From Diplonema japonicum (lineage: Eukaryota > Protista > Euglenozoa: Diplonemea), in contig OZ025655.1 in NCBI GenBank assembly GCA_964019335.1, positions 558,001 through 622,000 of the forward strand: DNA of 64,000 bases, written 5' to 3'. Shown here piece by piece: positions 32,992 through 47,275 of this stretch. The notes under the pieces are model-generated. The model saw only the letters and a program-made list of their open reading frames with translations, made no database searches and was not told the DNA's origin. The position numbers were made by a program, and so were the translations under genes. Position 1 is the stretch's first letter. Each line of letters begins with the position of its first letter.

Positions 32992-35900
32992 TCACCAAGG
33001 CCGTGTGGAGAGCATAACATCGTGGCCGCTGAAGGCTGCTGGAATGCTAACGGTAGCGATGAGCTTCACAAGAGAGAAGTTCGTGTAAAGTTGGAACGAG
33101 GGAAGCGACGCCTCACCATGCTGCATGGTCTGGCAGGAAAGGTAGAGAACAGGGAGCTTGGTGCAGTACGTTGAGGTCGTGAGCTCCAGTTGGTGGGTGT
33201 TGGCGTTCCACGCCGCACCCTTGGCGTAGATTCCTGTAACGTGGATCGCTGCCTCGTAGTTGATCTTTCTTGTGTCAATTTCCTTTGGGATTATGTTTAA
33301 CACTAACCGAAGCTCGGAGCAAGGGATCCCTTTGCTGAGACTGTACTCGTTGACCTCAGCGTCGAAGACTGCCCTGGGGTTGACAAAGGATTCCAGGTTC
33401 ACAATCGAAGGGTTCATCCCCTCGACAGACCATGCTGTGAAGAACCTGTGCCCCTCCCGAAGCGAGACGAACCATTGCCATAGTGACGCTGGTTGGAACT
33501 GGTAGTTGCAGCAGTAGTCCTCGTTGTTCACATTGCCGTTCCCCTTGTCCGTCATCACCCTCGCACACCGCATCCATTTCTCAGGCACCTCCCTCTCCAG
33601 TACGCTCAAACACGTCTGCACAATAGCCTCGTCAAACGGCACCTTTTTCCTCACCGCCAACGCCACCCTGTCGACGTCCTTGTTGATCGTATCGATGATT
33701 TTGTTATGCGCAGCTAGTTCTCCCTTGTTAGGTAGTTTCATTCCTCCTTTCTACATACCTTCAGAAGTGAGTACAACACCTTCAACACTGGGTTCGTTGC
33801 TTCCGGCAGCCACTCGAAGGCGTTCTCGACGTCAAAGACACCTGGTACCATGCGGGTGATGTCGTCGATCAACACGCGGAGATCCTTATCATGTTCGTGG
33901 CACACGAGGCTGACCCTGCTACGCGGGAGGGCTTTGGGTATCTCCTTGAATAACTGGGGGAGGGGGGTGATAAAAAACAATCTACCGAGCGGGACATACC
34001 TTCAGTCCAGTTGCCCGGTTGTGTTGTGCGACTGATGTCTCGGAGTAGCAGAGAATCTCGTAGTTCTGAGTTCATGTTTTCCTTTTCCGAATTGGTGTGC
34101 ATACTGTAGTTTCGCCCTTGGGCAGCCCTTCGGCATACTTGCACATCACGTGCTGTATGTTACCGACGAAGCAGTTCCCGTAGCTGTACTGGTCACCCTC
34201 GCAGCCTGCATGGATCGTCATTTCTGCTAGATCCTTGAGGATAGCGATGTCGCAGGATGAGGAGAGCCTAGCACCATAGATGGTGTTGCTAGTGAGGTGC
34301 CTGATGATAGGGTACGTGACAAGAGATGCATGGGTGTTCATGAGGAAGAGCACAAAGGAACGCACGCTTTCCATCAAATCAGTTGAGCTGAAGTGCGACT
34401 CGACAGATTCCGCCAGCCACCCATGCTCCTGCCTCTCCACCACAAGGCTGTGGAAGATGATGAGGCACGGCAGCACCCTTGCTAGGATTTGCAGCTTGAC
34501 AGGGTTCGCAATCTTCGACGTTGACGATGGCTGTTCGAAATACTCTCGAAGCATCTCAACACCGTGTCGTATCTCGTTCCCCAGACCTGTCGTTTTACTG
34601 ATACCTACTTTTTGGCACTTCTCGATCAATGTCGTGGGCAGCCCGAAGAACGACTGGGTCTGTATCACCAATTTGAAGTTCTTATGAGGGGTACCGTAGT
34701 CAGACAGCGTCTCCACCACATAATCCAACTCCCTAGCAAACTCGTCGGAGACCATCAAGTCAGAGATCACGATCCACCCCCCATCGTTCACAGCATCCGC
34801 GATGAGTGACTTCGCCATCGCCTTCTGCGAATGGGCAGCACCCACGAAGTACGTCTTCCGCACCATGGACACAGGGTTTCCTTCCTCGTCCTCCACCTGG
34901 TACCCAGCTACCACTTTCTTTACAATTGATATGAACCATAGTCTCTCAGCAATTACCATCAGAGGCACGAAGGGTGTCGTTGCCTCTAGCCTTTGCACCA
35001 GCTCCTTCTCGGGGCAGTGTACCTGCGAAGGGATATCCACCCCCAGCCCCCCGTCTTCACTACTGATGACTCTCTGCAAGCAATCCTGGAGGCGGTCTGC
35101 TCGCAGCGTCTTGCACACGTTCATTCGTTCGAATGGAGATAGCTGATGATGCCAGTCAGGCTCCTCCCATGGGCAGTACTCCTTGCTTGAGTACCAATCT
35201 CGGTACTGCTTCCAACTTGAGCTGCTCATTTTCTCCAACAAATCATCGTTGATGCTGTTGATTGAGGCCAACGTGTCGATGTACATCCAAGAAGTATGGG
35301 GGTTGGTTAACGCGGAGGATGCAAGATCTTTGCGGTGGGGCCCCATGTGGAGCATCTGGTGCTGGGGGTCAGGGCAGTCGCGAACGAAGATCATGATCCA
35401 CGCGAGCTGGATGTGGTGCTTCATGAGGCTTGCCGACATGGCGATCTTGTGGTAGAAGTGCTTCAGGATGGCGGCAGGGTCGTCGGTTGTGTGCAAGAGA
35501 AACCGGAGCTCGTCTTCGAAAAACTTAATGGAGAACTTTGAGGTAGGGAACAGCTTGGTGAAAACAAGCATCGAGAAGATCATCAAGACTACCTTCGAGG
35601 CTATCTGGTTACTGCTGATGACGTCTTCGGGTGTAGGAGATATCTCAGGCGTCTGCAACTCGAGCTTTGAGATCTCGGTGATGCTGTCATCAGCTGTTTT
35701 GAGGAGGTCAGGAAGTTCGGCGTCCTTCTTAGCAGCAGGCATGCCAGCCCCACTGGCCACTGCAGAGAGGGAAAGCTCAGCGTCGCGCAGAGTGGTACTG
35801 AGGTTCTTAATAGCGTCGCAGTAGGGAGCGGGGTATTTGTGCGCGATGACGATGGAAGCGAAGGTTGCCTTCAGCTTCTCTTCGTCCAGTTCGAAGGACA

Positions 35901-38900
35901 CGAAGCTCGTCGTGCATTTCATGTTCGCAGTCAATCTGTCGTCGATCGCGTCCTCCCTCATCAGTATCAGGAGCTTGAAGCCCTTCACCACCTTCACCGT
36001 TTTGTTGTGGATGTCGTTGATTACGGACCGCATCCAGTACTTCTCCAAGTCTGCTGATGTCACATCCTGCATCACAATGACACACGCCTCTTTCATCACA
36101 GACGTTACACTCTGCATCGCACTCTCCACATACGGGCTACTCAGTATGCGCAAGGCTGTCGTTGTGTATCCTTTGAAAGAGAAAAAAAAAGTTGGGAACA
36201 CACCATTCCCGCAGGACGCTTTCAAACAGCACATAGCCACCTTGTGTGGGTCACGTACAAACACCACTTGGTTCGGAGAGCACTGGGGTTTGTATTGTAC
36301 ACTGCAAATAGGAACGCATACCTTTATCGCGATGCACGGGAGAATCAAGCTATCAGGGACGCCTTTTTCCTTCCATTCTTGGGTGTCGCTCCGCATCACG
36401 ATGTCCTTGTAGATGGCAGCGGGGTTGAACTCCTCATCGAAGTCCACCCTATTCACCCGGAGGACCTTTTTGCACCTGTTTATCAACGTCGTGCGGTTCT
36501 TCAGCCCAGCACCCCATGTCACAACCGCCATCAACAGTAGCGCGTTCCCTTGACACATCCGAGAGTCCTCTTCGATCTTGGTCAGAACCTCTCTCCACTT
36601 TACTTTGCACCGTGCCCACTGTGAGTTGGTGAAAAGTTATTTGATTTACTAAGACACACCTCGTTCTCTTCGGTGAAGGCTTCTACTGAAGCCAAACATC
36701 TCTGGTACTTCATCTTCTGAGCTTCGTTGGTAGACAGGAGATCTTTGAGGACCTCCTCGGATAGAGTTGCCATCTTGCTGCAGGTTATTGCCGTTGTAGA
36801 TATGTTGTAAGTGCACTGTGTCCCTTCTGTGAGATATGCCTTACACGCCTCGTACAACTCTATCACAACATCGCCTACCTCCTTGCTGCACACGTCCGCT
36901 ACGCACATTCTCAAGTGCTGCCTGTCGAACCTGAACAATGTTAGCGGCGTGAAGTGCGTCTGCAGTGGGGCATGTCTCTCCAGAACTCGTCTAAACATAT
37001 CCCCCTCCGGATCCTTCACAACAATAAAGTGCAGCGCAGCCAACAGACTCTGCCTTACCATTTCCCTGACACGTTCCTTCCCGTGGTATCCTTCTCCCCT
37101 CCCGTCCAGCACCTTCCCTATCGCCATTGCTATGCTGTTCCATTCATGAGGAGAAAACAAGCCCATCACATCTCCGTGTTTGATCAGCGCGCCAATATCA
37201 CTGATGCACTCTTCTGGCAGGTTGTGTTCTTCAAGCAGCACAACGCAAGGTTTGTTAGAGATGAAAGCGGTGATGCAGACTTGTTTCAGAACCTCACGCC
37301 AGTCATTGAACGTGTGGTACGCAGAAAGCTGCGGGCAGAACAAATGTGCATCGCACAAGAAAGCTGCAAGGGCGATCTCGTCGATATTGCTTTCAGCCGT
37401 CTCGCTCAACAGCAGCGCGTGCCCATTCTTGACGCGGAACACCCTCAGCAGCTGTGTGAGGTTGTGCAGCACTGCTGTGTCATCCTCTTTTAGCAGCTGC
37501 TGCAGCATCTTCTGTTTCTGTTTTTTCTCCTCCGATGGGATCGCTTGCATGTACTTCTCCGAACCCTCCACCAGTGCAGTGCACCAGATACTTCGTGACT
37601 TGAAATCCCTGTAGTTCTCTATCCCGCCGAACCACAGCTCGGTTCGTTGTTTCATAATTTGCTTCTGCGTAAAATCCTGGAAGCTCCTCAGAACATTGTC
37701 CCAAATGGTCTGCTCCACCCACCGACGCTCCTTGCTGTCGGGTTCGAACCTGCCGGCAAATGAGAAGTTACACTCATTCACGAACAGTCGGATGACGTCC
37801 TCCGTGTGCACTGTCAGGTGCGGCGTGCTTTGGTAGATGCCTTGCAGTACAGACTGCATGCTTGCCAGAGTCCAGATATACTTCCCGCTCATCTCGGGTC
37901 TGTATTTCCTTCGCACGTCAACGAAGCTTGAGACCAGTGCCTGTGCCAAGGGACGTGCCAATGAAGAAGACTTTAAAAAAGCATTCTTTTTTGCCCAGGT
38001 GTCAAGTACTCCTTCCACGATCTCAACTAGTTCATCAGGCTGTGGTTCCACGATAGAGACACAATGGAAGCCTTGCAGCTCCCTGTCAGTAAATTGTAAT
38101 AGTCCTGTAGAGTCGACAGTGGCAGCAAAGGCGACGTCGTGGACGGTTAGCAGCTCGTTGGAGTAGGGGTCGTACCAGCCTTTGTTGTCGCGCAGCTGTT
38201 TGATGAATTCAAGGCAGTCTGCTCCCGCCAGCTCTAGTCCCTCTAGCAGGACTGTGAGAGGCTTGTTCAATTTGTCGGGCAAGCGGATGATGTTGTCTCG
38301 CGACTTCTGTAGCTTGGCACCGACTGTCGTCTCGATGTTCCGGGGGGTAGTGTTGGCACAGTAAATTGGCGTGCTGTGCCTTAAGGACTTGCTTAAAATG
38401 CTCAACTTCGCAGTTGCAGGGGGACCCACCACCAACACATTGATGCCCTTGTCCGTAAGGTGTGTCAGCATCCACAACAACCGCACCGAAGTCGTGACTG
38501 GCATGAATATTTCTGTGAGGTTGATGGGGCTCTTCTTTTCTTCAACAGGTAACGATGACCACCGCACCCATTCCCTCGCTTCCACATCGTACAGGTAGTC
38601 AAAGACAAGACCTAACTCGTCACCCATGGGCATCGGGAACCTTGCTGTCACACCTTTGTCAATGATGAGATTTCGGAAGAATTGGTTGAAAGACACTCTC
38701 TGTGCCTGTCCTACTGCCAATGCCGCCCCAAAGGACCAGACGCACGAGAACAGAATAATAGGTTCCACCACGGCTTCGACAAGTCCCTGTAGTGTGTCAA
38801 AAGACATAGCAAGCATACCTTGTCCACATCAACTGAGTACCGCGTGTTCTTCCTCTTGTTTTTGAAGCCGTTCATCACATTGAAGCAGCTGGTCACCAAG

Positions 38901-41808
38901 TTGGAACAGTTCAAAGGAAAGAATGCAACGGCCTTTTCCTTGGGGTCCTAAGGTGCGATTGGAAGTTTTGTAAGTCTCTGCATACCTTGTCGTGATTCCA
39001 GTCCCGTACAAGACCAGTGTCCTGTGCCCAGTTCATGAGGGGCGGCACGATATTCGAGAGTATCTCAATGACCAGGTTCTTGTATCTTGCAAGGAAGAAG
39101 TTTGGATCGAGGGCGTGGCGATTGATGTAGTCGGCAGCAGAGAGGGTGTCGCTGTCGGTGCAGATGAGCCAGCAGAGGTCGGAGAGCTCTTTAGGGATCT
39201 CATCTTCAGTGCCGAACTCGAAGATGATAGAAAGGTTGGCTGGGGCTCTGATGACCTCACCTGTCTCGAGCGTGAGACACCTGTCAGAGGGATCTAGGAT
39301 TGGGAAGATCATGGACAAGACCTTTGGGCTGGGCTTCCCATCGAGGACTATCCACTGCTGTTCATTTTCCCGAACCGTCATCTTCCTGAAGATGTGTGTG
39401 AAGGGCCCGTCATTCCATTCGTTGAACACATCAACCTTCCCGAACAGCGTCTCTGGTGTGAATAAGCTTACGTTGATGAGCTTACAGACTGCCTCGGGCA
39501 TTAGCGCTTCATGCACCGTTCGCCAGATAGTCGTCTTTCCCGAAGCAGGTGGGCCTTTCAGGATCACTGCCGCCCTGCATTTTGTGGCTTCGAAAAGCTG
39601 CTCGCACTTAGTGACAAATAGTTTTCCGTTACTCAGATTCTTCGAGTCCAAATACACTTCAAGTTCTTCCTTCGTATGTTCCACAAGCGACAGCTGATCG
39701 TCGGGCCCGGGGATGTCCATGCCCTCAGTCGCTCCGAAGCAGGCGCGCAAAATGTCCATTACCGTATCGTACTTGGAGGAACTGATCTGCCTCAACAACG
39801 TTTTCAAGAAGCTGTTCACGACCGCCATCATAGGGTGCTCGCAGATGGGGAGAATTTGAACAATGTGCTCAAGGGTCTGGAGAAATTGCTTCAGGGTGTT
39901 TTGAATATCAAGTCCGAGATCTGAATATGCGAGCCTCTCCAGCACTGAGGCTGAATATCTAGAAAGCATCTCTGAAGATGACTCGTCGGCACCGTTGAGA
40001 TAGAAGTTAACGCACAGCACAGTTTCCATGGGCACAAGCGGCGTGGCTATGGGCGGCAGGGCCTTCTTCAACAATTCAATGCTGTGCCTGGTGACGTCTG
40101 TCATCTTCCTCCCCGACAGCAGTCCGAAGACGCCGAAGGTACGGCTTGTGACAGGGACAACTTTTCCCTCGAACTGGTACGTCGGCGACTGGCTGGTTAT
40201 GGCAGACTGCGTGGCCGTGACCCCTTCACTAATAATGCCCAGTATCGCAGGGTCCAGCAAATCAATGTCTTCGAAGATGAGCCACATGCCAGACGCAAAG
40301 GTGCCTGTCAGGAGCCTAGCAATCGTTGCATGAGAGGCCTCGCTGTCACACTGCACCACTTGCCACTTCTTGCCCATCATCTGTGCCAGCTCTGTTAAGA
40401 ACTCTTTCGGAGAAAATGCAGGCATCAAATTGCGATTCATGTTGTAGCAAGGCGGGTACATCACGCACCCCATGTGCCCTGTGTGAAAGGCATGCATCAC
40501 GGATGCAATGACTTCTTCGGCTTCTGAGCCGAGCACTGTTCTATGCAGTACGCCTGTGTACTCTCCGTGGAAGTCATAAGTTGCCTGGAGCTGTTGCATG
40601 TATATTCTGGCCCAAGGCTCTTCTTCAGCGTTGGCGGGGGCGGCGTCTAAGTATTCGATGTCATCGTTGATGTCTCCCGGGGAGATCATGTCTAGGTACC
40701 ATCGGGGCTGTTTCAACCAATGTATTGAGTTCCTTTCTTTTACGTTCTCGCTGATCAACGTGGAGATCGTCTTCCTGATGCGCATCAGCGTAGCAAGTAA
40801 CAGCTTGACACGTTGCATTTTGTTCCCGCAGCGCACCCAATTCAAGACGTCGGCCACCATCTCATTGACAGTGTCGAGGATACGGCGAAACTCCTTCTGC
40901 ACCATTTCGCTGTGGCAGTTGATCTGCGTGTGGAGTTTGAAAGTTGTCTCCACCTGTCGTGTAAACTCGATCTGGACAGCAAGAAGCATGCATTGAGCCG
41001 GACGGAGCATCGCCCAGTGTCTCAACCCAATGTCGTAAAACGACTCTAATGCCTCAACGGTTTTCTGCCTTATGGTGCTTTTCATCTGACTCTCGAGGTC
41101 GGCCATCCACGTGTGGAAGGCACTCGATGTTGGAACAGGTTTCAAAAGAGGGATCTCTTCTCCATCCTCGCAGCAGATGCGGGTTATGCACTCGTCGGGA
41201 TCGCAATACACGTAATGGAAACAGAACAGCCTGCGGAAGAATTGCTGCATGTCATGCAGTCCCGCCGTTCTGGACATGGATATGATGGTGAGGACTTCGT
41301 CGGAGGAACAGAAGTACAGCCTGTTGATCTTGGTTTGGTGCTCTGCAACAATGTCACCCAGACCCAAGCAGAGGTTTTCGAAGTCATGGTTCATTTTCGA
41401 CATTTTGCTCTTCCATTTCTCGTCGACTAAGGTGCGGACATGGTTCTGCTTGTGCCGAAGCAAGTTCATGGCGTCGTCCCACTGCGTGAGGACAGAACCC
41501 TCCTGTGCGCCGTGGAAGAGGGGACGTAGATAGAGAACCTGCGACTGGCATCTCCCAAACTTCTCGAGGACATCATTGAGAAGCGACAAAGAGTTTCCCA
41601 ACTCAAGCAGTGCGTCTCTGTCTTCTATGCGTGTCGCCGTCTCGCTGCGCAGATCGTTCACAATGATAAGAGTGTCATCAATGAATCCAAAAGCTCTGTC
41701 AAAAGAGTTCACGAACTGCACCCCATCCCGCTCCTTCACCTCAAAGCACAGTTTGTCAAGCCGATCGTACAGCCCTATCAGCACTTGCTTCGCCTCATGC
41801 TGTGCCAT
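32992..41808 (-). CDS. Divergent dynein heavy chain-like protein (~2,832 aa), tail-less and stalk-less
   Basis: Linker (RLYFCSSDEVL, EDGEEIPL), EYTG, AAA2 GPPASGKTT/EWNDGPF/WIVLDG/LTLETGEVI, SCVWSFGA, PHKNFKL, IYGARLS, C-terminal IHVTGIYAKGAAWN. Introns 38948-38985, 38787-38818, 36619-36659, 36283-36321, 36156-36203, 34066-34104, 33954-33999 and 33724-33758 give 8,499 nt in frame. Confidence 0.88.
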
Positions 41809-42024
41809 CCCTCTGTTAGTAAAAATAGAGACGATACTGTTGCAAAAAAAGGGGGGGGAGAAGAATATATGAGTTAAAGGAAGTCTTTGTGAGATGCCCC
41901 CTTGGAAGAACAAACAGCTATCCCCCAAAAGAAGTTCGAAAGGCTTGGCTAGGGAAAGAAATAGAACATACAAGGTCTATTTTTTTTTTTTTCGCAGAAG
42001 AAAGAAAAAGGGGGTAACATCATA

Positions 42025-44892
42025 TCAGCAGTGAGCAATATCAGTGCCAGTGACAGGAGTGGACGAAGTGTTGCATATAAGCCGCCCGTTTGGGTACATC
42101 ATATCTGTATAAGCAGCGTCAGTGGGCACATTGATCATATTGAGAAAGACGTCGGCGACGACGGTAGTGCAAGAGGGGAGGAGGGTGAGCTCTAGCCATT
42201 GGTGTGCTTCCACGGCGTTGGTGACAACGGGCTCAGAAGGGTTATGTCCAGGACCGAATGTGTATCCGCCTCTGTATCGCACATCGATACCGAGTGCCTT
42301 GGCGAAGGGCAGTAAGTAGAACGCCAGCACAGACGATCCCCCATGACACTGCACCTGCCCGTAGCTAGCTATCTTTCCAAGATCATCAGTCCGCCCTATC
42401 CTGTTCCTGTCAACACCCGTTGCAAACGTGGTGGTGTTTAAGCTGTTCCTGATGAGCTGCACGCACTTCATCTGCACTTCTGCGGTGTCCTTGGCACCGA
42501 AGTCTAGTCTATCCACTAAACCCCGTAACTTGAATGCGATCTCCGTCACTTTCCCCGCCACTAATGGTGAGTCGTACGACCCCCGCATCCCGTCCTCGAA
42601 GAGGTAATACTCCCGTGACCCTTCCCCACCTGTTGTCGAGAAGACATGTGGCTGGTTCAGACGGTGCACACTCTCCTTGCTGACTGTGATGAGCTCCTCG
42701 CCACCATCCGCGTGCTGCACTGCTACGTCGTAGTGATTGTCTTCCGGACGTGTACTGACGATCACACCATGGTGCGTAACGAACTTTTCGCCGCCTTTCC
42801 CGTTCGCTTTCCCGACGTACTTCATGTACGTGTCGAGCTTGAACCTGATGTCAAGACCGCTTGTTTCTACTAATACCTTCCTTCCCTCGTAGTACTTGGG
42901 GGACTCGTCCAAGATGTCCATGTTCTTCGGGGGCTGTAACCATATCCCAAGGTTGCACAGTGCTACGCCGTCTTGGATAGTCTTCGGCGTCAGCTTCGGC
43001 AGACGTGCAAACTGCGCACAAGTACTGTTTGAGGTCACAGCGTCCTTGAAGATCTGCTCCATGTCACTGCTCTCCATCCACACGCGGAACTCCTCCACAG
43101 CTTTTTGATCAGCATCATGTGCAGGTGCTACGCCCACGTCACCTCCCAAGGCCACTTGGTTCACGATGGTCACTTTGTTGCCACTTGTAGTCACGCCCTC
43201 AGAGGTGGGCGCTGTCGCTATTTTGGCTGCAGTTGCAAAAGGATCCTTCCCGCTCAGAAAGGTTACCACTGGCACCGATAGGACTTCGTATCTACTACCA
43301 TTTTGACCGAGCTTCTCAGCGAAAATATCAACTTTTGGGATTGATTTTGCCAAAGGCTGCCACTTCTTCCAGTTGTGGAACTGGTCGTTCGTGAGCCACG
43401 CGATCAACGTCTTGGGTCTGAGCGTGGCGAGCTCACCTTTTTTGACTTCCGCATACGACGGCAGCATGGACACAATAGATTTGACCCTTAAGGGGTGACG
43501 CAAACCTATCGACAGCACGATGCCAGCACCCCAGTCATATCCCATGAAGTGTGCCGCGTTAATATCGAGTGAGCGCATGACAGCCATAGTGACGTCGACG
43601 GGTCCACCTTCATCGTTGTTGTACTCGCTGCGTGACTTCCTCGGCTCGCCTGGTGAAGAACCGAAACCGGGCTGGTCGATGGCAATGGGCCACAGCTTAC
43701 AATATACCAGTGCAGGGAACCAGTGCTCGTACTCAGCAGCTGAGCTGGGGCAGCCATGCAGCAAAAACACAACATCGCCCTTTCTCTCCCCCACGGGCCT
43801 CACCGTGTGGATAGGGCCCAGTTTCGTCTTAACGACCTCCGAAGTGGTGGCCACACGGCCCTTCAACCACGGGATGACTCTGGGCGCTTCCCTTTTGATG
43901 CTTTTCTTCTTCTCGACACGTACAATTTTCTTCGGTTTGTTTTCAATCCTTCCACATGCAGTTGCAAACTTCAGTGTGCACCTCGTTTCAAAAGCCGCCT
44001 CCTGCGCCGGCGACACGGTAGCTATAACCACCGTACGGCAGTCACCACCGAGGCTCTCTTTCAACAGGCGTGTGAGGGTAGAGTTCCTGTACGGCACGTG
44101 TGGTGACTTATCGAGAAGACGATGCACCACATCAATAAGGTGGAAAAGAGAGCTGCTGATGGTTTTCGCTTCTTCAAGCCGCTCACCTGTGGCGCCGGAC
44201 GCTTTGACCTTTTCGCTTCCCGCCAAATCCACAACGTTGAGTTGAGTATTTTCCGATAGAGTGAGCTGGATAATAAGATGGCTTCGGCTGCTCACTTCGT
44301 TTAAATTAGTCGCACCTGTAGCCCTCCTGGACCCTGCAAGTTTTATCAGACGCTCAGCCTCCTTCGTTGTAGTAAAAGGCACGACAGTGGCACCCTCCAC
44401 GGTGACGCTTGTATCGGTTGTCTTGAGCTTAAGATTAGGCGAACTGGGGGAGAGAAGGTCGGAAAGGTTCTCTTTGTAAATCTGAAAAATGGAGATGGAG
44501 GGTTCTGGCTCTACTTCGAGGATGGTGTCGAGGATCCTGCTAGTGAGGTGTGTGATGGTGTGCGTTTTGCCGGACCCCGACTGGCCGTAGGCAAAGATAG
44601 TTGCATTGTACCCATCGAGGAAGGAGTCCACCGCCTCGCGCACGGGGCTGTTGTAAACGTCCTCCTCCGTGCAGTCGCCCTTGAGGGCGGTGTCGAACTT
44701 GAACTCTGTGATCTCCGATGAGCCTTCACCCTCACTGTTGATCATAACAGGCACGCCGTTCTTGCTGCCGACGTATACCTTGTTCGTCTTCTCGTCAACA
44801 CCCACACAGCAGACCACCCTCCCATTCACAACTTCTCTTTCCAGAGACGGTCGTACCCTCAACATCACCCTGATCTGTGCATCCTTGCCCAT
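42025..44892 (-). CDS. Kinesin motor + alpha/beta-hydrolase + transglutaminase-like fusion (955 aa, intronless)
   Basis: Kinesin motifs GQSGSGKT, NEVSSRSH, DLAGSE, HVPYRNS. Hydrolase motifs LLHGCP, IDQPGFGSS, GYDWG. TGL motifs GQVQCHG, LGIDVRYRGG, AHQWLE, VADV. Confidence 0.9.
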   Translation of the reverse strand: MGKDAQIRVMLRVRPSLEREVVNGRVVCCVGVDEKTNKVYVGSKNGVPVMINSEGEGSSEITEFKFDTALKGDCTEEDVYNSPVREAVDSFLDGYNATIFAYGQSGSGKTHTITHLTSRILDTILEVEPEPSISIFQIYKENLSDLLSPSSPNLKLKTTDTSVTVEGATVVPFTTTKEAERLIKLAGSRRATGATNLNEVSSRSHLIIQLTLSENTQLNVVDLAGSEKVKASGATGERLEEAKTISSSLFHLIDVVHRLLDKSPHVPYRNSTLTRLLKESLGGDCRTVVIATVSPAQEAAFETRCTLKFATACGRIENKPKKIVRVEKKKSIKREAPRVIPWLKGRVATTSEVVKTKLGPIHTVRPVGERKGDVVFLLHGCPSSAAEYEHWFPALVYCKLWPIAIDQPGFGSSPGEPRKSRSEYNNDEGGPVDVTMAVMRSLDINAAHFMGYDWGAGIVLSIGLRHPLRVKSIVSMLPSYAEVKKGELATLRPKTLIAWLTNDQFHNWKKWQPLAKSIPKVDIFAEKLGQNGSRYEVLSVPVVTFLSGKDPFATAAKIATAPTSEGVTTSGNKVTIVNQVALGGDVGVAPAHDADQKAVEEFRVWMESSDMEQIFKDAVTSNSTCAQFARLPKLTPKTIQDGVALCNLGIWLQPPKNMDILDESPKYYEGRKVLVETSGLDIRFKLDTYMKYVGKANGKGGEKFVTHHGVIVSTRPEDNHYDVAVQHADGGEELITVSKESVHRLNQPHVFSTTGGEGSREYYLFEDGMRGSYDSPLVAGKVTEIAFKLRGLVDRLDFGAKDTAEVQMKCVQLIRNSLNTTTFATGVDRNRIGRTDDLGKIASYGQVQCHGGSSVLAFYLLPFAKALGIDVRYRGGYTFGPGHNPSEPVVTNAVEAHQWLELTLLPSCTTVVADVFLNMINVPTDAAYTDMMYPNGRLICNTSSTPVTGTDIAHC

Positions 44893-44965
44893 CTTGTGTA
44901 CCTGATATAATCAAATTGCTACGAGCATTCTAAATAATTGGGGGGAATGAAATTCATGATCGTGC

Positions 44966-47275
44966 TTAGTCCTTAAACAAAAAGGCCATGACCTGGGCGT
45001 TTGGTTGGCAATCGGGCACGCTCGCCCACTCACTGCTGATGATGTCGTTGATGTGGCGCAGCCTGTCCAGCTCGTTGAACTGCTCAGTTGCCTCTTCCGT
45101 CATGTCTGCCTTCATGAGGCGTTCTGCCCATGTGGAATACACTTCAGCCAAGAAGGAGTTGATAGCGGGCTTGCCAGCAGGCCAGCAATAAATTAGCGAT
45201 GTGAGGGTACGGATGAGGTCACCCTGCACCCTGGCAGCTTCGAACCGATCGGAAGGAGGGTTTGCTGCCAGGTAGTGAGCCACCTGGTATGACAGGTAGT
45301 GCCGAGGGTGCTGTCTGGCAAAGGCACTACATTTCTCCCTCACGGTCTCGACGTTCTTCTCTTCGCTGGCGATGACCGCACATACAGCTTCTTCCTCTTT
45401 TATGAGTGCAGCTGCGACATCAGCATCAATAGGAGCGTTGCAGGTAAGACACTGCAAAACAGTACCCACGCGGCCTGCAAGACTCCCACCACATGAGCAG
45501 AGCCCTTCGTGCAGCCCTTCACACTTGACGCCTGCTATGTTTGCAAGGTTCTGCACCCTAGCGAGGAACGTGTTAGACATGTCCGGAAGATCGACACCTC
45601 TGTCGATATCAGGGAACAGCAATCCCTCAGAAGGGTCGAAGGTCAGGTGATGCGTCACAGGACGATCCTCGCCGTTGATGGAGTACACGATGCCGTCACC
45701 CTCCACACGAAGTGCCACAACATCGCCGTCGGGATCGCTGAACTCCACCTTCGTCTCTTCTGTTCGGGCTACTTGCTTTTTGACGCAGAACACCTCAGCA
45801 TCGTCATATGGCATGCTGCACCTGTCACATTGGCACAGAAAGCCCCACCTGTTCTTCAAAGCTTCCTGCCTCACCTTCCTCGGGGCAATCAGGATATCGT
45901 CGTCTAAGTACGCAAGGCTCAAGCTTTCGTCCTTTTCGATGTCCCTGATCGACCTGAAGGACCCTTCGTTAGGCACCACAACACCGTTGGGTGCACAGCT
46001 GTGGTTGCAGAACGAAATGGTCGGGAACACCCTGAGCTCGAGCTCACCGTCGGATCCCACGAGGCCACCGAACCCGTTGTAATGGAAGCAGCTTGCGATG
46101 GACACGATCTGCGCCATTTCGTTACACTTTTCTTTTCCCGGACCGTACTCGGGGTGCTTAGACTCTACATCTGCCTGTATGCTCTCAGTGAGGAGCGGGT
46201 CCCCACCTGTTAACTGCAGGCCTGATGCAAGGAACTCCTTCATTTCATCACATGCCGTGTACATTTCTTTGAACTTCGATACGCCGTCTGCCGCCCCACT
46301 CGTTCTGACGTGCACTAGGGGGCTGTCCTGTATGACCTCTGTCTTGACAGGGATATTACCACCGGCGACAAGATACCTGCCAAGGAGGGGCGAGGTCTTC
46401 ATGACCCAGTGTCTCTTAAGAGGGGTTTCTCTGCGTTTGAAAACCATGAGGACGTCCTTGTAAAGGGGCCAGTTGGGGAGCGGCACACGTGTGACTTCCT
46501 CGAAGTGCTGCGAGACATAGTATTGGAATGCGGGGCTGAAGGACTGCCCTGTAGGCTGCAGGGTGGGAGTGTAGACACCGAACGTGGAGTCGGCCCACTC
46601 GCCGATGAGGATGAGGGTGTCGTTGGTGTAGTTCTTGAGACATTCGAGCCCGAATGTGCCCTTCCCCATGAAGTCGGGCCACATGAGGACCAAGGTGCGG
46701 TCGGTGCCAGCTGCAACACCGGGGCCGCCTTTCTTGATGGTGCCGTACGTGGCGAGGACGTTACAGGCGTCTCCGGTTTCCGACTCGTTGTACTCAGACA
46801 CCCAGTCCTCGCTGCAGTCGTAGCAATGGATGTCGACACCGTTGTCCTGCAGTAGGCCTGCCCAGTACCCTGTACCACCACCGATTTCAATGAGCGGAGC
46901 ATGCTTCGTGAGCTCCGCAAGAGCGGGTTTGTTCGGGATGCTCCATGCGAATTTTCTCTTCATCTCTAAGCTCTTCTTTGTGAACTCATTCATTGCAGCA
47001 ACGGGAACTCCGACCTGTGCGGAAAGACACCCCCTGAAGACAGCACCTGTCTTGTTGCAAAGCTCGTTGACCGTTTGAAGGTATTCGTTCACACCCTCTT
47101 CCTCTACGTCTCGGTCAGCATCAAGCGCGCACAAAGGATGCCCCATCAATCCTGTTTCCTTCAAGAACACCGCACTGCACAGAGCATTGCCCCCAGGACC
47201 TTCGACTTCTGGTTTTGCTTCTCTCTTAACCTGGCCTTGCTTGGACAGCCATTCAACTAGACTTGCATCTGCCAT
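44966..47275 (-). CDS. Class I SAM-methyltransferase-like + SMYD-type SET domain fusion (769 aa)
   Basis: FAWSIP..LIEIGGGTGYWA..IHCYD (Rossmann motif I). SET motifs LGRYLVA, SFCNHSCAPN, LSLAY; post-SET WGFLCQCDRC. Confidence 0.85.
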   Translation of the reverse strand: MADASLVEWLSKQGQVKREAKPEVEGPGGNALCSAVFLKETGLMGHPLCALDADRDVEEEGVNEYLQTVNELCNKTGAVFRGCLSAQVGVPVAAMNEFTKKSLEMKRKFAWSIPNKPALAELTKHAPLIEIGGGTGYWAGLLQDNGVDIHCYDCSEDWVSEYNESETGDACNVLATYGTIKKGGPGVAAGTDRTLVLMWPDFMGKGTFGLECLKNYTNDTLILIGEWADSTFGVYTPTLQPTGQSFSPAFQYYVSQHFEEVTRVPLPNWPLYKDVLMVFKRRETPLKRHWVMKTSPLLGRYLVAGGNIPVKTEVIQDSPLVHVRTSGAADGVSKFKEMYTACDEMKEFLASGLQLTGGDPLLTESIQADVESKHPEYGPGKEKCNEMAQIVSIASCFHYNGFGGLVGSDGELELRVFPTISFCNHSCAPNGVVVPNEGSFRSIRDIEKDESLSLAYLDDDILIAPRKVRQEALKNRWGFLCQCDRCSMPYDDAEVFCVKKQVARTEETKVEFSDPDGDVVALRVEGDGIVYSINGEDRPVTHHLTFDPSEGLLFPDIDRGVDLPDMSNTFLARVQNLANIAGVKCEGLHEGLCSCGGSLAGRVGTVLQCLTCNAPIDADVAAALIKEEEAVCAVIASEEKNVETVREKCSAFARQHPRHYLSYQVAHYLAANPPSDRFEAARVQGDLIRTLTSLIYCWPAGKPAINSFLAEVYSTWAERLMKADMTEEATEQFNELDRLRHINDIISSEWASVPDCQPNAQVMAFLFKD

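Follow-up and report, generated by a model that had tools for sequence, protein, structure and literature searches.

The tails of kinesins normally serve dimerisation and cargo binding. Motors fused to enzymes are known, as in the fungal myosin-chitin synthase, the myosin III kinase and the myosin IX RhoGAP. Among proteins of the transglutaminase/papain fold, the vasohibins carry a non-canonical Cys-His-Leu triad, and Cyk3 joins an SH3 domain to an inactive transglutaminase-like domain, without a motor. Transglutaminase-like proteins are also found on ciliary and centrosomal microtubule structures (DRC7/CCDC135, CEP76 and CC2D2A; Zhang and Aravind 2012, PMC3495828); the active ones were proposed there to remove tubulin modifications, and no kinesin fusion is described. 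The gene considered here lies on the minus strand of a 64,000-nucleotide stretch of the diplonemid Diplonema japonicum genome (assembly GCA_964019335.1, contig OZ025655.1, positions 558,001 to 622,000; hereafter the window). Its product joins an N-terminal kinesin motor to two enzyme-like domains, an α/β-hydrolase and a transglutaminase-like domain with a Cys-His-Asp triad. This conserved motor-enzyme fusion is real and uncharacterised. Full-text literature searches turned up no description of a kinesin whose tail resembles a hydrolase or a transglutaminase, and the table of Wickstead et al. 2010, which lists Pfam/CDD architectures for 1,624 kinesins from 45 genomes, has no entry in which hydrolase, esterase or Transglut is named. 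All feature coordinates given below are window positions on the minus strand.

The protein is encoded by a single intact open reading frame (ORF) of 955 amino acids with an ATG start (42025-44892), in which the kinesin motor is followed by a basic linker, the α/β-hydrolase, a helical part, a β-barrel and the C-terminal domain. RNA contigs (Logan; one organism, three runs, each from a different study) cover approximately 41865-44902 with 0 mismatches; in two of the runs this is one piece, and in the other the 3' untranslated region (UTR) is carried by a second, overlapping contig. Past 44902, every RNA piece continues for 18-21 letters; read as the reverse complement, CTACAGTTTCTGTACTTTATT, they correspond to the 3' part of a spliced leader of the euglenozoan type. 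The AG spliced-leader acceptor is accordingly placed at 44902-44903, where the contigs of all three runs (X4, X5 and X9) pass from genomic to spliced-leader letters, so that the body of the mRNA starts at 44901 and a 5' UTR of 9 nt precedes the ATG. At the other end, the stop codon (42025-42027) is followed by a 3' UTR of at least 160 nt, the contigs reaching 41865/41866 (feature 41865-42027). Since the spliced leader is found on contigs that span all of the domains, the contigs derive from RNA and all domains are encoded by one trans-spliced mRNA. An earlier note, made from the letters of this DNA, had named a single mRNA and an architecture not already characterised as checks on its proposal of a kinesin carrying two enzyme domains; the spliced-leader-bearing contigs extend across the entire ORF, and no published description was found. 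The 62.5-Mb assembly contains one copy of the gene. The copy of a second organism is ~98.6% identical, with 21 differences within the ORF of which 16 are synonymous and five are not, an excess that indicates purifying selection.

An exhaustive phmmer search with residues 561-955 retrieved 204 proteins at E ≤0.001, where word-index searches had given just 6 and 4. Closest to the Diplonema japonicum protein are those of two other diplonemids, Diplonema papillatum and Namystynia, with 49-56% and 43% identity over the tail (residues 340-955 or 561-955). All four parts occur in the same order in ~45 representative clusters, and transcriptome-derived orthologues of 963 and 986 amino acids are colinear from end to end. 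The fused form is seen in Diplonema papillatum and Namystynia karyoxenos, in Chromera velia, Prorocentrum cordatum and Breviolum minutum, in the choanoflagellates Didymoeca and Diaphanoeca, and in the prasinophyte Cymbomonas tetramitiformis, taxa that together span four eukaryotic supergroups. A fifth, Amoebozoa, is suggested by a 500-residue sequence from Pelomyxa schiedti that bears the name kinesin in its source; the parts recognised in it are the barrel and the C-terminal domain only, and it groups with the kinesin-fused clade in a tree of these two parts. No relatives of the barrel and C-terminal module were found by motif scans of 185,579 prokaryotic genomes or of the viral contigs of IMG/VR.

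Trees were computed as quick maximum-likelihood searches, with support from the Shimodaira-Hasegawa-like approximate likelihood-ratio test (SH-aLRT) only. In the motor tree, 23 fused motors from diplonemids, alveolates, choanoflagellates and the prasinophyte cluster together (SH-aLRT 94), apart from 30 paralogues sampled from the more than 100 kinesin paralogues of this genome. The tree of the barrel and C-terminal module contains a diplonemid clade (support 98) and a separate clade (support 100) of 27 proteins that have neither a motor nor a hydrolase. These stand-alone proteins (P0054, P0056, P0068, P0075, P0081 and others) are 430-560 amino acids long, are encoded on metagenome contigs of up to 70 kb, and have an N-terminal part of 50-200 residues without a match to any Pfam family. 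The Diplonema papillatum orthologue (P0001) is 1378 residues long, with large low-complexity insertions, and repeats the C-terminal domain in a further partial copy (1078-1260 and 1260-1376), which is either a local duplication or an artefact of the gene model or assembly. It is deposited as 'Kinesin-like calmodulin-binding protein', a name that was probably transferred from a best hit.

The motor domain (residues 12-315; 43948-44859) matches Pfam PF00225 with an E-value of 1.4e-76 and 258 bits, against a cut-off of 29.3. Its motifs are intact: the P-loop GQSGSGKT at residues 103-110 (44563-44586), switch I SSRSH at 201-205 (44278-44292) and switch II DLAGSE at 222-227 (44212-44229), all read from the sequence, as well as the microtubule-binding motif HVPYR at 265-269. 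Comparison with motors in the PDB, made without a labelled reference set of kinesin families, gives 143-166 bits for kinesin-1, -2, -14, -4, -5, -8 and -3 with no clear winner among the families. The kinesin motor profile has 128 matches in the 62.5-Mb genome, mostly within long open frames, which puts the number of kinesin genes well above 100, very many for a single-celled eukaryote.

The motor is followed by a neck linker and a short basic linker (residues 316-348; 43849-43947), delimited by composition and by the first hydrolase strand, β1, which starts at residue 349. These 33 residues come after the neck-linker-like IENKPKK and contain 12 Lys or Arg, 3 Asp or Glu, and prolines. No coiled coil was found in the linker, and AlphaFold2 (AF2) models of residues 340-600 and 561-955 are globular, with no helix longer than 20 residues anywhere in 340-955. 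With a proline-bearing linker of this length and a globular remainder devoid of long helices, the protein as modelled has no coiled-coil stalk, an element that is typical of kinesins, though not defining. In the relatives, motor and hydrolase are mostly ~50-90 and up to 130 residues apart, and a short neck coil may be present in those relatives with the longer gap.

The α/β-hydrolase domain (residues 349-560; 43213-43848) is delimited by Pfam PF00561 (Abhydrolase_1; 47.6 bits versus a cut-off of 25.8), the AF2 model, Foldseek, alignment and conservation. The AF2 model of residues 340-600, built from 43 relatives, has a predicted local distance difference test (pLDDT) score of 91.2, shows the eight-stranded core with the nucleophile elbow after β5 that characterises the fold, and yields more than 500 Foldseek matches at E ≤0.001. 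The nearest overall shape is that of the cap-less 'CIB-like' hydrolase Ta0194 (3bdi), with the best E-value, 6.3e-15, and a target-normalised TM-score of 0.84. By sequence, the N-terminal half is nearest to the epoxide hydrolases EphA/EphB (E 2e-9), human sEH and the haloalkane dehalogenases; in alignments with EphA, EphB and a dehalogenase, HGCP falls residue for residue on the HGxP of these enzymes, and GYDWG on their GHDWG, which holds the Asp nucleophile. The putative site comprises His379-Gly380 (43753-43758), Asp453 in the nucleophile elbow (43534-43536), Asp503 (43384-43386) and His506 (43375-43377), and conservation among 43 sequences is 91% for His379, 98% for Asp453, 91% for Asp503 and 100% for His506.

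Two features set this domain apart from its closest sequence neighbours. Epoxide hydrolases and dehalogenases carry a helical cap that provides Tyr/Trp clamps, whereas here β6 (470-476) and β7 (494-500) are separated by just 17 residues, so that the cap is absent. The catalytic His of those enzymes sits in the loop after β8; the corresponding loop here (residues 527-533) has no His, and no conserved column in the 43 sequences. Asp503 occupies the usual position of the acid after β7, and the invariant His506 follows three residues on (Asp-x-x-His). By the aligned sequences and the model, two characters that define epoxide hydrolases and dehalogenases are thus missing from the domain, although its site, in rearranged form, is strongly conserved. 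We know of no precedent for a role as a 'deacylase' in a hydrolase with an Asp nucleophile.

Two smaller parts connect the hydrolase to the C-terminal domain. Residues 561-665 (42898-43212) are modelled by AF2 as a β-hairpin and a small helical subdomain, with pLDDT mostly 86-98 except at residues 583-589; Leu-Pro 631-632 and Trp651 are conserved among relatives. Residues 666-746 (42655-42897) form an SH3/Tudor/KOW-like β-barrel of five strands, assigned by VIA-align, with matches to the PHF1/MTF2 Tudor, NusG KOW and SMN Tudor domains at Z 4.2-5.5 and root-mean-square deviations of 1.2-2.6 Å over ~50 residues.

The C-terminal domain (residues 750-955; 42028-42645) is assigned to the transglutaminase-like (papain) fold by AF2, VIA-align, Foldseek and triad conservation. 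The AF2 model of residues 561-955, built from 84 relatives, has a pLDDT of 94.1 and a predicted TM-score (pTM) of 0.89. The triad consists of Cys849 (42346-42348), His897 (42202-42204) and Asp914 (42151-42153), which are conserved in 96%, 98% and 99% of 84 sequences, respectively. In the model, a helix of 19 residues (849-867) starts with Cys849, the next-but-one strand (897-904) starts with His897, and the strand that follows (909-914) ends with Asp914, a predicted placement that is the canonical geometry of the transglutaminase fold. From the Cys helix on, the sequence reads C-x18-LGIDVRY-x2-G ... H-x-W-L-E ... D, which we take to mirror the Transglut_core signature.

VIA-align was run as a search against all representatives and then in a second pass over the candidates of Foldseek. 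Ranks 1-23 of the search are all transglutaminase-fold proteins, with Z-scores of 7.1 for TG2, 7.0 for TglA and TG3, 6.8 for factor XIII, 6.5 for LapG, 5.0-6.4 for arylamine N-acetyltransferases, 5.4 for PNGase and 5.2 for VASH1, as well as several axonemal chains. Rescoring of the Foldseek candidates gave 105 chains at Z ≥5, with TG2 highest at 7.5, and the listed neighbours at this level are all transglutaminase-fold Cys-His-Asp proteins except for one match to a Tudor barrel. Foldseek itself ranks LapG first, with an E-value of 3.9e-3, a probability of 1.00 and a target-normalised TM-score of 0.42. A look-alike search of the ESM Atlas with residues 561-955 gave no usable match. The uniform list of neighbours, the Cys/His/Asp geometry, the signature-like stretch and the conservation of the triad together carry the fold assignment, and the domain is read as a divergent, probably active member of the superfamily that lies outside every named family within it. 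Protease and transglutaminase neighbours are tied within 1 unit of Z, so that fold scores do not separate the two chemistries.

These results agree with the domain reading of the earlier note. The intact kinesin motor that it described is borne out by the Pfam match and by the presence of the P-loop, switch I and switch II, and the short basic linker without a coiled-coil stalk by linker composition and by helices of at most 20 residues. Its Asp-nucleophile α/β-hydrolase without the usual catalytic His is recovered by Pfam, alignment and conservation, and the segment that it called SH3/KOW-like is the barrel matched by VIA-align. It had also located a transglutaminase-like Cys-His-Asp triad in exactly the codons given above and had linked the fold to PNGase and vasohibins, both of which are among the structural neighbours; the AF2 model and the fold searches return that fold, and conservation of the triad in orthologues, which it had set as a check, is found. 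As to function, it had proposed a probably monomeric motor that would bring a protease, deacylase or cross-linking activity to tubulin or the axoneme.

Taken together, the domain organization points to a conserved N-terminal-motor kinesin with an all-globular, enzyme-like tail, which would hold a thiol enzyme at the microtubule and thereby modify a bound protein, a reading to which we assign a probability of roughly 55%. The motor would bind to or walk along microtubules and keep the thiol enzyme within nanometres of their surface. Like all active members of its fold, the Cys-His-Asp domain would act as an amidase, a peptidase or a transglutaminase, and it may cut, deamidate or cross-link a protein bound to the microtubule. 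The simplest candidate target would be the C-terminal tails of tubulin, the other being a protein associated with the microtubule or axoneme. The hydrolase domain may supply a second, chemically different activity, or a grip on the substrate.

Several observations weigh against this proposal. That tubulin tails or microtubule-bound proteins are the substrate of the enzyme domains is something we infer, and nothing points directly to tubulin. The motor-less clade of 27 proteins means that barrel and C-terminal domain are able to function independently of a microtubule motor. The hydrolase, with neither canonical His nor cap, may be inactive or of unfamiliar chemistry. As for the C-terminal domain, structural Z-scores of 7-7.5 and a Foldseek E-value of 3.9e-3 are middling values. 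The Pfam Transglut_core profile (PF01841) aligns with residues 854-904 at 19.0 bits (E 0.0018), below its cut-off of 23, and gives weak matches in 7 of 47 relatives, the best at E 1.7e-4. A profile of the 47 relatives found no match among all PDB sequences even at E 10. Comparison of the family profile by hhalign with the two canonical Transglut_core proteins of this genome was not significant (E 0.1 and 0.32); the alignment with the first of them (E 0.1) places the Cys helix sensibly.

The alternative that survives best, though rather unlikely in our estimate, is that both enzymes are active on a substrate that is neither tubulin nor bound to microtubules, and that the motor just carries them to a site such as the flagellum, the cell tip or the feeding apparatus. 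The thiol enzyme would then have a soluble molecule, a membrane or a glycan as its substrate, through, e.g., PNGase-like deglycosylation or NAT-like acyl transfer, and the hydrolase would work on a small molecule. PNGase and the arylamine N-acetyltransferases are indeed among the fold neighbours (Z 5.4-6.4), the N-terminal half of the hydrolase is nearest to enzymes of small molecules (epoxide hydrolases and dehalogenases), and the stand-alone clade functions without a motor. Without a stalk, however, the enzymes would sit only a few nanometres from the lattice, and the open, cap-less site of the hydrolase would suit macromolecules better than small hydrophobic substrates; these points are indirect.

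Distinctly unlikely, in view of how well the sites are kept, is that both enzyme-like domains are pseudo-enzymes, serving an ordinary transport kinesin as modules for binding cargo or peptides in the manner of the inactive Rad4, Cyk3 and CC2D2A. The unusual hydrolase, devoid of cap and canonical His, would fit such a role, as would the marginal sequence similarity of the C-terminal domain to active transglutaminase-like families and the existence of inactive ciliary transglutaminase-like domains (PMC3495828). But the known inactive versions have lost the triad, whereas Cys, His and Asp are each retained here at 96-99% across 84 sequences from several supergroups, and Asp453 and His506 of the hydrolase are conserved at 98-100%. 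Finally, although the same-strand genes of the window are separated by just 40-100 nt, the idea that the long ORF is an artefact of mis-assembly or of read-through across two or three adjacent genes was rejected, and may practically be set aside, on single RNA contigs with a 5' spliced leader across 41865-44902 in three runs, alongside colinear full-length orthologues in transcriptomes and genomes of many taxa.

The proposal of a microtubule-held thiol enzyme also has a more far-reaching form, which we consider doubtful. The protein would represent an ancient kinesin family that carries a tubulin-code enzyme, e.g., a detyrosinase or the missing general deglycylase, and that trims or cross-links tubulin tails while moving; it would in addition carry a cap-less hydrolase with an Asp nucleophile and a His moved to the β7 loop, a previously unseen arrangement. 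For enzymology, interest also lies in the hydrolase as observed, which retains an Asp nucleophile of the epoxide-hydrolase type without a cap and with its invariant His relocated. More generally, a conserved kinesin with a tail of two enzyme-like domains would represent a different use of a motor, in which catalysis is brought to the track itself. Diplonema papillatum is genetically transformable and has an orthologue, so that the candidate can be tested. For several tubulin modifications, most eukaryotes have no known eraser. Peptidases of the transglutaminase fold have been put forward for this part (PMC3495828), and the kinesin-enzyme family provides a concrete candidate. Its absence from the classical model organisms surveyed in 2010 may explain why it was overlooked.

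The surroundings of the gene are densely packed. All 24 ORFs of at least 250 amino acids in the window are on the minus strand, which is the polycistronic layout of euglenozoans. Upstream, a SET/methyltransferase-like gene has its stop at 44966 and RNA contigs that terminate at 44944-44961, leaving very tight spacing to the kinesin gene (44893-44966). Downstream (34072-41973), three consecutive ORFs, spaced by 41 and 94 nt, contain dynein heavy-chain domains that begin within DHC_N2 and lack the N-terminal tail; the dynein ATG and the stop codon of the kinesin are ~215 nt apart. The kinesin 3' UTR terminates with a dispersed element of 44 nt (41861-41904; sense orientation on the minus strand), immediately followed by the pyrimidine tract and the AG that belong to the next gene. 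A first look gave 368 candidates for this element genome-wide; all 40 that were scored match at 89-98% identity, and a T-rich tract follows in five other loci as well. RNA contigs accumulate and break at the element, for which no Rfam match and no stable fold were found, and which may be a short repeat or a signal for the 3' end or for trans-splicing. A 41-nt stretch of high depth (41864-41904) had been considered as a genomic copy of the spliced leader; this was rejected, as the stretch belongs to the 44-nt element, a different sequence.

Of the described systems, TG2, TG3 and factor XIII are the best structural neighbours of the diplonemid C-terminal domain, at Z 7.0-7.5 over ~170-189 aligned residues with 7-11% identity. 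They share with it the Cys-His-Asp triad and LGI-x-x-RY after the Cys helix, and its G-Q-x-x-C motif is reminiscent of the GQCW of animal transglutaminases. In contrast to these enzymes, the diplonemid domain lacks the β-barrel C-terminal domains and the Ca2+/GTP sites, and its triad residues lie closer together in the sequence, with 48 from Cys to His and 17 from His to Asp; the latter value equals that of PNGase. The bacterial transglutaminase-like cysteine proteases (LapG, 3isr and TgpA) have a compact core of similar size, but are periplasmic. Vasohibin-SVBP is likewise a cysteine enzyme of the transglutaminase/papain fold, and one that acts on the microtubule lattice. It matches at Z 5.2 (6wsl) and 4.9 (6j4s) over ~134 residues, and no vasohibin was among the matches of any sequence search, so that the link is one of fold similarity only. 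Vasohibin differs further in its need for SVBP, in having no motor and in its triad, where the diplonemid kinesin has Asp as third member; the animal transglutaminases and LapG are nearer in structure to the diplonemid domain. Axonemal chains are also among the fold matches (7n6g_6E, Z 5.6; 8glv_Eb, 4.8; 8tid_H, 4.8), and the ciliary transglutaminase-like proteins belong to a different sequence family, with neither motor nor hydrolase. Cyk3 resembles the diplonemid kinesin in placing an SH3-like barrel beside a transglutaminase-like domain. The known motor-enzyme fusions follow the same principle as the diplonemid protein, a motor that covalently bears a catalytic domain, but their motors are myosins.

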